A DNA stretch of 64,000 bases, taken from the NCBI GenBank assembly GCA_023515725.1, contig JALDTO010000251.1, positions 434,001 to 498,000 of the forward strand, written 5' to 3'. The position numbers and the translations under genes were made by a program. Position 1 is the first letter of the stretch, and the number at the start of each line of letters is the position of its first letter. The stretch is from Amoeboaphelidium protococcarum X5. Its lineage: Eukaryota; Fungi; Aphelidiomycota. This document shows positions 22,386-27,748 of the stretch, piece by piece. The notes beneath the pieces were generated by a model. That model was not told where the DNA came from and ran no database searches. It saw only the letters and a list, made by a program, of their open reading frames with translations.

Positions 22386-24107
22386 ATGCCCGAATAATAA
22401 TCTAATAAAAAAGTTGCAATCATTGGAAGTGGCATTACTGGAGTTGGTGCTGCATGGAGTTTATCTAATACTTAAGGATTTGAAGTGACATTGTATGAAG
22501 CTGCTGATCGGCTTGGTGGTCACACTAATACTATCTAGTTCAAGAATCCCGCTGAATTTGATGGTTCAATCCCTGTTGACACTGGATTCATTGTTTTTAA
22601 TAAGCGCACCTATCCCAACTTTGTTCGCTTCCTTGAAAAGTTGGCTGTCTCCTACAAGGGAAGTGATATGTCCTTTGCAGTTTCCAGACGCTTCAGTGAT
22701 TAACTTAATACTCGCGCTAGTGGCGGTTTTTTATCCACGTTTAATCCGTTAAATGTTCTTAGCCGCTTGGTATTCGGAATGTAGAGGGATTTAGAATGGT
22801 CTGGTGGTGGTTTGTGGACAGTGTTTGCCTAAACGTCCAACTTGCTTAATCTCTCTCATTACTTGATGGTATTTGACATATTCAGGTTTAGTTATTGTGC
22901 TCCGCAGCTTCTCAAGAGTCCGCAGATGAAAGACTGGTCTATTGGAAAGTATCTGGAACACTATGGGTTCTCCTAATACTTTATAGACAATTATTTGATC
23001 CCCATGACTGCCTCAATCTGGTCCACTGATGCGGATGCTTGCTTTGCCTAATTTCCTGCAGTTACTCTGATTCGATTTATGCTCAACCACGGTCTGTTAT
23101 CCATTTTGGAAGAACGTCCAGTGTGGTACACGGTTGATAATGGTTCATGCTCTTACATTTAGCCTGCATTGAAACGCGTCAAATCTATAAAGACTGGTTC
23201 TGCGGTGGTTGAAGTTAGTTATGACTCTTCTACTGCGCGCAATACTGTTCGGGATGCGAAAGGTGATGCCCAGGAATTTGATTACGTTCTGTTTGCTTGT
23301 CATGGTGATTAAGCTCTAAAGCTGTTGAAAGATCCGTCAGTCAATGAGAAGAAGGTTCTGTCCAAGGTAAAGTATAGTCCAAATGTGGCCTATGTACATT
23401 CTGATCTATCTCTGATGCCTCGTCTTAGATCTACTTGGTCTGCATGGAACTATATCTGTTAGGATTAGTCTGAAAGTGGAAAAGTTGATCTTAATGGCTC
23501 GTCTCAAGTCAAATTAGAGTAATAGAAGAATGGATCAGTTTGTCTAACTTATTGGATGAATCTGTTGCAGTCTATCGATGAATAAAAGTATGGTCAGGTT
23601 TTAGTGACTTTGAATCCGATCAAGGAACCTAGTAATACTATATAGAAAATTGAGTATCGTCATCCTTTATACAATAAAGATTTAGTTGATGCGTAAGAGG
23701 AGTTGCGATGTATCAACCAAGACGCTGTACATCCTGGTGGGAATAGACGTTTGTTTGGAGGTGCCTGGGCCGGCTATGGATTTCATGAGGATGGATTATT
23801 TAGTGGGCTCAGTATGGCTGCTCTGGTTGGTGCCAAATCCTCAATTGGTGTATATGATGCCAGCCATCTACACGAAGTTGGTATTAAAAGTGCGTAGTAT
23901 GGTCAGACGGATTCATTTTAAATGGATTCGCCGATGGAGATTGATGACATACTGAATAACCACGATGCTTAGTTGGATAATATCGCCAAATCTAAGCGCA
24001 CTGGTCTATCCTATATTGCTGAGCTGTACACTTTGGTCATTCTGACTTGGCTCAACTTTTGGATTGGTCTTTGCAGTCGTATTCTTAAAACCTTACACTT
24101 GTACTGA
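22386..24107 (+). CDS. FAD-dependent oxidoreductase of the Cfa-associated type (COG2907 / UfaD-like), 573 aa
   Basis: VAIIGSGITG dinucleotide-binding motif, EAADRLGGHTNT, PVDTGFIVFNKRTYPN, SDMSF, LMPR..WSAWNY, CLTYWMNLLQ, YRHPLY and GAWAGYGFHEDG. Confidence 0.9.
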
Positions 24108-24112
24108 AATGA

Positions 24113-24139
24113 ATATATATATATATATATATATATACA
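24113..24139. repeat. (AT)n microsatellite between convergent 3' ends
   Basis: atatatat run read directly. Confidence 0.8.
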
Positions 24140-24223
24140 TCTACGGCGGAAAGATGATAGTTAATATGAAAAGTGAATACAAATTGAATATATAAATCTT
24201 ATTCATTGACACAGTGTATAGAT

Positions 24224-25498
24224 TCAATTTTTAGTCTTCTTTTGGAACAAGTAATGACTAACATACCACTCCTCCCCCTGGTTGTATGCAAATAGCTCAG
24301 CGACACTGATGTAAAAGATTCTCCACTTGACGAACCACTTGTAAGCCTCATCGGACGCCTTCTTATCCAAGTCTTATGGGGAGAGTTTCTCGGCATTATC
24401 ACCATTCTTGGATGAAAGATACTCAAGCTGTGACTTTTTCAGCACATCCAAAGCCTTTGCCTTGTTCTTATCCATCAACGATAACCAATTTTCACTAGTG
24501 TGAGCATAATGCATCCCATTCACAATCCACTGATCCACCAGAGTCATTGAATCCTAAAAATACAAGAACAGATCTGCACTTGGCATAGTGCCGCCAGTGA
24601 AAAAGTTACGCGCCATCCAGCTATGTCTCTCATCCACCTTAAAATGATACGGCCAACTCTTGTGACAGAATATGTGACAAAAGAACAGTCCCTCATCTTT
24701 CAGCCAGCTCGAGATCTTGGTGAACAGCTGCTGATAATTCTTCATATGCTCCAACATCTCAATGGAAACGATACGATCAAACTGCTTCTAGCTAGTGTCA
24801 AATTCATTGACATCTGCCGTGATAATAGTCAAGTTCTTGAAGCCCTTACTCTTAGCCACAGAGTCGATATGCTGCTTCTAAGTCTTGCTATTACTCAAAC
24901 CAGTAATCTTGGATTTAGGATACTTCTCAGCCAGATACAAAGACAGCGATCCCCATCCACATCCGAGATCAAGTACAGATTGACCATCAACCAGCTGGGC
25001 CTTGTCGCAGTAAGTGGCCAGCATGCGGTCCTCAGCGGCATCCAGATCGCCATCATTCACCACCACTACATTCTTACCACCTTTTTGAGTGGGAAATAGA
25101 CAACAAGAATACTTGAGCCTTTATCCCAAACACATTTAGATGAACTCAGATGGAACTTCATAGTGCTGCTCATTAGCCTCCTTGGTATTCAATGCAACTT
25201 TACTGGACTTTAGCTACTTGACAAACTACATTCTGTTCTCGCATACATCCTCCTAAGTGGCCGCATTAACTACGCTAGTCCTATAGCCAAGCAGAGTTCT
25301 AACCAGCGGACGTAGAACGAAATCCGGGATGTATCCATTATCGATAATAGGCTCATACCACTCTGCAACAGGAACGGTATTATCATCAGCGACCGCCTCC
25401 GACACGACTGACTACTTAGCCAGCGACTTGCTAGATTGAGCCTTCTTATTATCAACAGCGGATTACTATTACTACTATTTTCTACTAGCCACCACCAT
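24224..25498 (-). CDS. Cfa-family class I SAM methyltransferase (coclaurine N-methyltransferase-like subgroup), 424 aa
   Basis: ANEQHYEVP, LKYSCC, VLDLGCGWGSL, SNSKTQ, DRIVSIEMLEHMKNY, HIFCH, WMARNFFTGGTMPS and EEWYVSHYLF. Confidence 0.9.
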
Positions 25499-26272
25499 TT
25501 CTAAACTACTAACAAAGGTTTAAATTATTAATGTGATAAAGACAACTATGAAATGTATCGAATTAAGAGAGCGAGCGAGAAAGCAAAGAGACACAAAGAG
25601 AGAAGGAGAGACCACGGCGAAACAAAGACGAAAGTACTACAGTATATTCTGGATATCATTTGTTGAAAGTTGACTACAGTATATCCGATATGGAACTTTA
25701 AAGACTTGATACCTGATTCAGATAGCAACTAATCTGTGAAAAGTAAATCAGTGCTAAAAGTAATTGATAGATATCATTGTACACTCTTGGCAACGTTCAA
25801 CGTTTCAGTAGACACTACACACACTAGTTGAATCACTTTACTTGTCACTCCTTATTAAATGCACTCTAATACTAAATTATGGATCTGAATAAGGTGAAAG
25901 GTGCGTACTAATAAACAGTTTCAAGACGGTACCATAAAATTACGTCATTGACCGATGGATGCGTTGCTATGAACCGCAAAAGTCTAAAGAACCGCGCGAT
26001 CATCAACTATTTGCCCAAATTTTCGGCTCGCACTCAGCCACCCGCTCCACCTGCGGGCCGGCGATTTGTCATCAAGCGAGCGATCAGTTCAGACAATCAA
26101 ATTCATTCATTCATTCATTCCCGGTGCTGTCTTTCTGTGCCTCTACTCGCTCAATTTTTGTATTCATTCGGTATACAGTTGATAATTCTGCTCCGGTTGC
26201 TGTTGATCCTCTGCCCTTGAATAATTATTAACTTGTATTTACTTTTAGCATTCTGTCTCTGGTTAGTTGAAA

Positions 26273-27748
26273 ATGTCTGCCATTGCCATTAAAGCATCCA
26301 ATTCTATAGGTAAGCTTTATCCTATGTAATTACGTCATTGTTAAACAATTTTTTATGTAGGCCGCTCAGTATTTCACGCACTGATTAGTCGCATTTCCAT
26401 TGGGCAGTTGACTGTTGTGGAAGAGTATGCTGGTACATCTTCTGCCGATGCTGAAGATGTTATTAATGACGAAACAAATCGTAAAGTCTATGGTTCATTT
26501 CAAAAGGGCCAGTTAAGTGCTCAGCTCACCGTGAAAGATGCCTACTTTTACACTAGACTGTTGTTGCATGCAGACATTGGGTTCAGTGAGGCGTACATCA
26601 TGGGCGAGATTGTGGTTGATGATTTGACCAAATTGTTATAGATCTACACCAAGAACTCTGCCAACTTGAACAATTTGAACTTGGCAACTGCTTCAGTGGG
26701 CAACATCTAATACGTAATCACTCATAACATGCTCGCCAATACTATCAGGAATTCCCTGTCCAACATCAGTGCTCATTACGACATTGGAAATGAACTGTTT
26801 ACCAAGTTTTTGGATGACAGCATGATGTATTCTAGTGCCGTGTTTGCCGAGTCTGATGGCCGAGGTCAGGATGCATTGTACAAGGCTTAGATGCGCAAGT
26901 TGTAAATGATTTTCGATAAAGCCCGCCTCAAAGCTTCTGATAATGTCCTGGAGATTGGTACTGGATGGGGCACGTTCGCCATTGAGGCTGTTAAAAAATT
27001 TGGCTGCAAGGTGACAAGTATCACTCTGTCCAGTCAGTAGTATGCTTATGCTTGCAAGAGAGTCTCACTCCTTCCAAGTGAGCATAGCCGCAAGATTGAT
27101 ATTCGATTGATGGATTATCGTGACTTGCCCAAAGTATTCCCACTGCATTCATTCAGCAAGATTGTGTCCATAGAGATGATTGAAGCTGTGGGTCCACAGT
27201 TTTTGAACACCTACTTCCAGGTGGTTAATTAAATGCTGGATTAGCGCGACGGTGTGATGGTATTCTAGTGTATAACGATGCCTGAGACGAGATATGATGC
27301 CTACTGTAAAGGTGTTGATTTCATCTAGAAGTACATCTTCCCTGGTGGTCATTGTCCATCTGTGACTGCACTTACTAATGCCATCTCTAGTGGCACGGGT
27401 AACTAGTTGATCATTGAGAATTTGGAGAACATTGGTGTGCATTATGCTCGTACTCTGCGTGAGTGGAGAGATAGATTTTTGTAGACTTATGACCAACTGG
27501 CCACCTTTCCAAAGTATGTCGAGAAGCCTGATGGTGGAAGTGGTTTGATTGCCTAAGCTTTGGGATATGGAGGTACACGTAAGGAGCCTTTTTATGGTCA
27601 GGAATTCAAGAACAAGTGGCTTTACTACCTTTCCTATTGTGAAGCCGGGTTTAAGGAGAAGATGTTGGGAAATGTGCAGGTTGTGTTGAATCGTGACGCC
27701 AGCTGGGCTGCTATAGAAGGCCAAGGGCTAGAGAATTATGCTCTGTGA
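26273..27748 (+). CDS. Cyclopropane-fatty-acyl-phospholipid synthase family methyltransferase (Cfa/UfaM-like); probable intron 26310-26360
   Basis: DIGFSEAYI, NISAHYDIGNELF, MMYSSA, VLEIGTGWG, SIEMIEAVG, DFI(TAG=Q)KYIFPGG, HYARTLREW and YYLSYCEAGF. GTAAGC...TAG intron. Confidence 0.92.

Follow-up and report, generated by a model that had tools for sequence, protein, structure and literature searches.

A fungal lipid-modification gene cluster resembling bacterial furan fatty acid operons in the aphelid Amoeboaphelidium protococcarum

We analyzed a 64,000-nucleotide stretch of the Amoeboaphelidium protococcarum X5 genome (contig JALDTO010000251.1, positions 434,001 to 498,000; hereafter the window), in which a flavin adenine dinucleotide (FAD) oxidoreductase gene (g1) and two genes of Cfa-family S-adenosylmethionine (SAM) methyltransferases (g2 and g3) are immediate neighbors. 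Gene content, bacterial operons, and fungal synteny agree in supporting these genes as a functionally linked lipid-modification cluster that mirrors the bacterial ufa operon. A sequence-only reading of the window had made the same proposal and left the product as methyl-branched, cyclopropane, or furan acyl chains; the furan option is now favored, since g2 falls in the FufM/LIME subfamily and the genome encodes a UfaO. UfaM, UfaD, UfaO, and FufM define the furan fatty acid (FuFA) pathway in Rhodobacter and Rhodopseudomonas (PMC7380195), and we consider it likely that the fungal cluster supplies three of these four bacterial-type steps on the way from 18:1 to 9D5. We infer each catalytic step, substrate, product, and stress role from the bacterial pathway.

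The three genes and their protein families

Position numbers are those of the window, and translations use table 6, in which TAA and TAG encode Gln. Lists of open reading frames (ORFs) made with the standard code split the locus into fragments; read with TAA and TAG as Gln, it resolves into three long intact genes (Table 1) at the place where the three-gene cluster had originally been noticed. Genes in this 23.6-Mb assembly occur in duplicated (homeologous) pairs, with g1, g2, and g3 each single per subgenome, and the homeologous contig C57 keeps all three in the same order. Codon differences between the window and C57 (synonymous/nonsynonymous) number 94/37 in g1, 67/19 in g2, and 62/8 in g3 exon 2, and the C57 g3 intron lies in the same place but is longer and diverged. 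Three public runs from one study of a close strain (X2, X3, and X4) behave as RNA, in that they skip exactly the g3 intron; their contigs cover g1, g2, and g3, at depths that give no expression ranking, and one of the three runs contains the poly(A) end. Because the table-6 translation of g1 is identical to a public protein (P0001), RNA covers the genes, and the homeolog changes are mostly synonymous, the many TAA and TAG codons do not mark pseudogenes. By a rough estimate, the chance that any three of five named genes lie consecutively among 4,000 to 8,000 genes is p ~1e-6; the recurrence of the arrangement in other fungi, described below, weighs more than this figure.

Table 1. Coordinates of the cluster genes and of features between and within them
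Feature	Position	Strand	Description
g1	22386-24107	+	UfaD-like FAD oxidoreductase, 573 aa, intronless
g2	25498-24224	-	CNMT-like CMAS-family SAM methyltransferase, putative FufM/LIME subfamily, 424 aa, intronless
g2/g3 head-to-head gap	25499-26272	no strand	774 nt, candidate bidirectional promoter
CRE/ATF-like motif	25940-25948	+	TTACGTCAT, in the g2/g3 gap; weak, noticed post hoc
g3 exon 1	26273-26309	+	From sequence and RNA contigs
g3 intron	26310-26360	+	51 nt, GT..AG; skipped by RNA contigs of three runs
g3 exon 2	26361-27748	+	UfaM-like Cfa/CMAS-family SAM methyltransferase, 474 aa spliced; poly(A) at 27838

The g1 product matches the Pfam domains Amino_oxidase and NAD_binding_8 and is an amine-oxidase-fold FAD protein, which we take to be of COG2907 type. 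It shares 29 to 36% identity over its full length with FAD proteins of bacterial ufa-type operons and keeps the FAD motif and the family residues, which bears out its initial designation as a FAD oxidoreductase. A structure model (predicted local distance difference test score of 85.9) has LkcE as its nearest fold (TMt 0.84) and ends in a long C-terminal helix, which is probably a membrane anchor; a hydrophobic C-terminal tail is found in 100 of 117 fungal-type homologs versus none of 13 bacterial ones, with g1 itself borderline (1.56).

Database searches with g2 and g3 used stop-free pieces or exons, and trees used g3 exon 2. Pieces of both proteins match CMAS (PF02353 in Pfam). In the PDB, the g2 homeolog piece matches coclaurine-type N-methyltransferases best (E 2e-29 versus 7e-7 for Cfa), and g2 sits in a CNMT-like clade that in bacteria is operonic with ufa genes and DUF1295. 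By sequence, g2 appears to belong to the FufM/LIME (CNMT-like) subfamily, the link to FufM going beyond the initial reading; the Arabidopsis gene AT4G33110, a named FufM homolog, is CNMT-like as well. The g3 product clusters with UfaM-like proteins of fungi and of bacterial operons (Shimodaira-Hasegawa-like approximate likelihood ratio test [SH-aLRT] 96) and is separate from both E. coli Cfa and the C9-methyltransferase. Compared with E. coli Cfa, g3 carries Gln at the position of His266, as do its bacterial operon-type relatives, and keeps Glu239 and Tyr317. Full-length relatives of g3 score 197 to 215 bits against the 400-bit cut-off of the NCBIfam Cfa equivalog NF008686 (g3 itself was searched in pieces), and g3 or its relatives therefore depart from canonical E. 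coli Cfa in both the cut-off and His266. Such a departure may still leave cyclopropane chemistry open to g3, because the plant cyclopropane synthase (CPS) enzymes are not of the E. coli type either.

In the tree, g2 and g3 form two deeply split clades, and neither clade includes E. coli Cfa or the C9-methyltransferase-like pair of this genome. This separation rules out an origin by tandem duplication and upholds the earlier placement of the two genes in different subfamilies. The third Cfa-family pair, with N-terminal hydrophobic segments (L022:3950-5488 on G000:C200, and contig C33), is presumably the fungal sphingolipid C9-methyltransferase. We considered and rejected g2 and g3 for that role, as the C33/C200 locus fits its shape and g2 and g3 fall elsewhere.

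Linkage of the pathway genes in fungi and bacteria

We examined 11 eukaryotic loci, selected without sight of their neighbors for their taxonomic spread or closeness; below, D, M, O, and F denote UfaD, UfaM, UfaO, and FufM-like genes, and <> a head-to-head pair. Pathway genes are linked in six of these loci, in shuffled orders. All four lie within ~14 kb in Hyaloraphidium curvatum (F<>M ... O<>D), and the head-to-head F<>M pair seen there and in the window recurs in L152, a standard-code locus of a close relative whose genes are sister to those of the window. Basidiobolus has three adjacent genes (D-M<>O), Rhizophagus has a single gene between O and D (M<>O-x-D), M lies five locus tags from an O<>D pair in Chytridiales JEL0842, and Synchytrium microbalum harbors a D<>M pair. 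In two Funneliformis species, additional to these six loci, UfaD lies at a distance of four locus tags from UfaM. Nonparalogous pathway genes are thus linked in several lineages, as expected of a eukaryotic metabolic gene cluster, and the synteny raised as a check for aphelids and chytrids extends across several fungal phyla.

Several other genes were seen at these loci. The UfaO-like (DUF1365) gene of Rhizophagus irregularis that is head-to-head with UfaM is unannotated (L064:4703-6105) and was seen only by tblastn. A sterol methyltransferase gene lies inside the Hyaloraphidium cluster, adjoining UfaM (L148:11973-13480), and a short-chain dehydrogenase gene follows UfaM in L152. A V-SNARE gene directly adjoins UfaD in both Chytridiales JEL0842 (L062:13305-14135) and Alternaria (L063:8293-9188), and a SNARE gene is near UfaD in Geosiphon (L067:5856-7351). 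An M48 peptidase gene is found near the cluster in the window (15341-16444) and directly adjoins the FufM-like gene in L152 (L152:253-1213).

The same families are linked in prokaryotes. Among 29 bacterial and archaeal loci, picked solely by similarity to g2 and scored for neighbors within 7 kb, a g1 ortholog is present in 19, a g3 ortholog in 16, DUF1295 in 21, and UfaO in at least 10. Bacterial orthologs of g1, g2, and g3 occur in one operon, and a Rhizobium g2 ortholog adjoins DUF1295 near sigma/ChrR genes. The co-occurrence of these families with DUF1365 in bacterial operons, invoked from the start, is evident in this set.

The A. protococcarum DUF1365 (UfaO) gene is present as two homeologous copies unlinked to the cluster (L020:3837-5489, minus strand, on G000:C192; L021 on C212), which score 165 to 167 bits over the whole model. 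The 551-aa protein includes hydrophobic segments and is extended at the C terminus by ~200 aa; the DUF1365 genes of Chytridiales (682 aa) and Hyaloraphidium (534 aa) are long as well. The statement that the window holds no DUF1365/UfaO gene stands, and the genome yields both families proposed for a search, with a DUF1295 gene on the contig of the window ~118 kb from the cluster. Desaturases are encoded in the genome as well, and each enzyme of the four-enzyme Rhodopseudomonas route (UfaM, UfaD, UfaO, and FufM) has a candidate here. A fourth linked pathway gene was sought in the cluster flanks and none was found; the flanks carry a ubiquitin-like/BAG gene, IscU, and a cullin.

A shared divergent promoter had been proposed for g2 and g3. 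The head-to-head gap is there, and may act as a bidirectional promoter. RNA contigs are absent at 25829-26019 in two of the three runs (X3 and X4). The CRE/ATF-like site in the gap falls within a stretch that the homeolog shares without change, and the divergent gap of L152 contains TTACGTCA; the window contains three such motifs versus 0.47 expected. A further TTACGTCAT is located at 26330-26338, within the g3 intron. No promoter motif common to the fungal gaps was found, the CRE-like site being limited to the window, its homeolog, and L152.

Elsewhere in the window, three minus-strand frames were noted by eye: an ORF resembling mitochondrial cytochrome c peroxidase (45303-46439), 18 kb from the cluster; a long ORF with a Crinkler-like N terminus (55996-57876); and a Copia-like integrase/pol frame that runs past the window end (60878-64000).

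A candidate furan fatty acid route and its rivals

FuFA synthesis by this gene set would take place on membrane or lipid-droplet phospholipids. The UfaM-like g3 would use SAM to methylate the cis double bond of an 18:1 chain, giving a methyl-branched trans-monoene that the FAD-dependent, UfaD-like g1 would desaturate to a conjugated methyl-diene. The unlinked DUF1365 protein (UfaO-like, C192/C212) would then insert oxygen from O2 and close the furan (9M5), and the FufM-like g2 would add the second ring methyl to yield 9D5, a potential scavenger of singlet oxygen and radicals. Clustering, often as head-to-head pairs, probably serves the co-regulation of these steps.

Several observations weigh against this route. 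UfaO lies outside the three-gene cluster, and LkcE, although the closest solved relative of g1, carries out a chemistry that differs from the step proposed here. No clustering was seen in five of the 11 eukaryotic loci (Neoconidiobolus, Geosiphon, Alternaria, Microbotryum, and a Logan contig, which breaks off immediately past the gene), which include both Dikarya tested (Alternaria and Microbotryum). Orthology of g3, g1, and g2 to the characterized UfaM, UfaD, and FufM is indirect, by way of operon context and an Arabidopsis paper (PMC10940516), and the literature that we found demonstrates FuFA production for no eukaryotic ortholog. In older work, linoleic acid is the source of eukaryotic FuFA (PMC11945187), and cotton CPS1/2, which are plant oxidase-Cfa fusions, make cyclopropane acids (PMC3132707).

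This last activity underlies an alternative that we judge unlikely, in which the cluster makes cyclopropane (possibly cyclopropene) fatty acids as do the Malvales oxidase-CPS fusions, with g1 as an accessory oxidase and g2 methylating another lipid. GhCPS1/2 expressed in yeast give 17-carbon and 19-carbon cyclopropane acids, and the FAD domain boosts the yield ~threefold; however, GhCPS3, which groups with the Arabidopsis homologs, made no cyclopropane, and Arabidopsis has none (PMC3132707). Fungal g3 relatives do carry a cyclopropane synthase annotation, but such annotations are automatic and the function is stated as unknown (PMC10282164), and the closest g3 relatives lie far under the NCBIfam Cfa equivalog cut-offs. 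Nor does cyclopropane synthesis explain the recurring linkage to DUF1365 and a FufM-like gene.

It is likewise improbable that the same enzymes act on a eukaryote-specific substrate or yield a different product, be it linoleate, sphingolipid or sterol-ester chains, FuFA of other lengths, or a methyl-diene signal lipid, with g2 perhaps a small-molecule N-methyltransferase or other methyltransferase like CNMT. Alkaloid N-methyltransferases are the best structural relatives of g2, the reported linoleic acid origin of eukaryotic FuFA points the same way, and the Hyaloraphidium cluster includes a sterol methyltransferase. Against this, bacterial g2 orthologs are operonic with ufa genes, the Arabidopsis member of the subfamily is a named FufM homolog (PMC10940516), and the sphingolipid C9-methyltransferase-like gene of this genome is a separate locus.

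Phylogeny bears on two further readings, namely recent transfer of the cluster from bacteria as an operon and a parasite-specific adaptation to reactive oxygen species of an algal host. The g2/g3 and g1 trees are quick trees, in which one truncated fusion row forms a long branch, and they sample the matches of our own searches. All named proteins among the top 120 matches of g1 are fungal, and g1 falls inside a fungal group with moderate support (SH-aLRT 85). The g2 product is found in a eukaryote clade (96/99), sister to L152 (99/97), and its placement among bacteria is rejected by the approximately unbiased (AU) test (p=0.0006). The g3 product is on the fungal side of a 100/99 split between fungi and bacteria; its AU value of p=0.23 reflects a constraint that merely shifts g3 to the fungal base, where an aphelid belongs anyway. 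On these match lists and trees, g1, g2, and g3 group with fungi and appear vertically inherited, a recent transfer of a bacterial operon is disfavored, and the horizontal option raised by the sequence-only reading is not supported. The bacterial operon does have the same members and the organism is probably an algal parasite, but the cluster genes use the host TAR-Gln code, g3 has an intron, and the cluster occurs in nonparasites, leaving transfer or a parasite-specific adaptation very improbable. The suggested protection of a parasite of photosynthetic cells likewise finds no support, because orthologs extend across fungi and saprotrophic and mycorrhizal fungi share both the genes and the cluster; a general antioxidant or light-stress role is a better guess.

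Chance adjacency or passive retention of an old gene order is hardly credible. Unrelated neighbors recur too (V-SNARE by UfaD in the chytrid and Alternaria, M48 peptidase in the window and L152), so old microsynteny exists. Selection for co-regulation would nevertheless fit this small sample better, because lineages differ in gene order and in head-to-head partners, yet the genes so rearranged remain those of the pathway set.

Implications and comparison with known systems

Bacteria have an established FuFA pathway, and one has been proposed for plants; the fungal clustering and gene set are new here, and the novelty is limited because the chemistry is already known from bacteria. In a 2025 review, the FuFA producers listed are bacteria, algae, and plants only. 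Our literature search, mostly without subscription papers, found no paper assigning fungal genes to furan fatty acids and no account of the fungal cluster or of fungal orthologs as a FuFA pathway. Tentatively, the last common ancestor of aphelids and fungi may have possessed a clustered, complete four-enzyme FuFA pathway, of which early-branching phyla would have kept shuffled head-to-head pairs and Dikarya dispersed genes. If so, this would explain the occurrence of 9D5 in mushrooms, and light-induced fungal "cyclopropane synthases" such as Coprinopsis cfs1 would make a furan lipid or its precursor. In the one mushroom analyzed, 9D5 far exceeds 9M5 (PMC9883336). Furan fatty acids, which are present in mushrooms, are valued dietary antioxidants, and the cluster points to a complete, compact, and mostly intron-poor candidate gene set for making them in fungi. 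Conservation of a lipid-modification cluster across early fungal phyla, as seen here, is also rare, and the cluster offers a testable re-reading of the widely annotated fungal cyclopropane synthases.

Coprinopsis cinerea cfs1 and cfs2 are early light-induced, and cfs1 is needed for fruiting (PMC8805025, PMC10282164, PMC12230235); their likeness to g2 and g3 is at the level of the Cfa family, and these papers describe no cluster. In Chlamydomonas, singlet oxygen induces CFA1 together with the CNMT-like CFA2/CPLD27, DUF1365, and DUF1295 (PMC4067076). The FAD-oxidase and Cfa domains of cotton and Sterculia GhCPS1/2 and SfCPS (PMC3132707) correspond to g1 plus g3, but the plant enzymes are fused, their product is cyclopropane, and no FufM or UfaO partner is needed. 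The aphelid locus lacks such a plant-type fusion of an N-terminal FAD domain to Cfa; g1 and g3 are individual genes that flank g2, which is encoded on the opposite strand.

BfaA of the actinobacterial 10-methylstearate pathway has a PCMH FAD-binding fold. The BfaA/BfaB system and the aphelid cluster both place a Cfa-family methylase beside a FAD oxidoreductase; BfaA is a proposed reductase (PMC5660069), whereas g1 has the amine-oxidase fold, and the Bfa system includes no DUF1365.

The bacterial FuFA pathway, encoded by RSP2144, RSP1091, and RSP1090 in Rhodobacter sphaeroides and by RPA2569-2571 and RPA0924 in Rhodopseudomonas palustris (PMC7380195), comprises the same four protein families as found in this genome, where three are adjacent, and the bacterial orthologs share operons. 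The window genes differ in being monocistronic, with a head-to-head pair, an intron, and an unlinked UfaO; the FufM-like gene is clustered with UfaM and UfaD here and separate in R. palustris. UfaD and UfaO also have C-terminal hydrophobic extensions, and the aphelid system is known from its genes. In Arabidopsis, a UfaD-UfaM fusion (AtUFAMD1, AT3G23510) and homologs of UfaO (AtUFAO1, AT1G30130) and FufM (LIME1/AtFUFM1, AT4G33110) localize to lipid droplets, where FuFA synthesis has been proposed (PMC10940516). The plant genes lie on different chromosomes, with UfaD and UfaM fused, whereas the genes are separate and clustered here; both organisms have homologs of all four enzymes, and in both their function is proposed to be FuFA synthesis.

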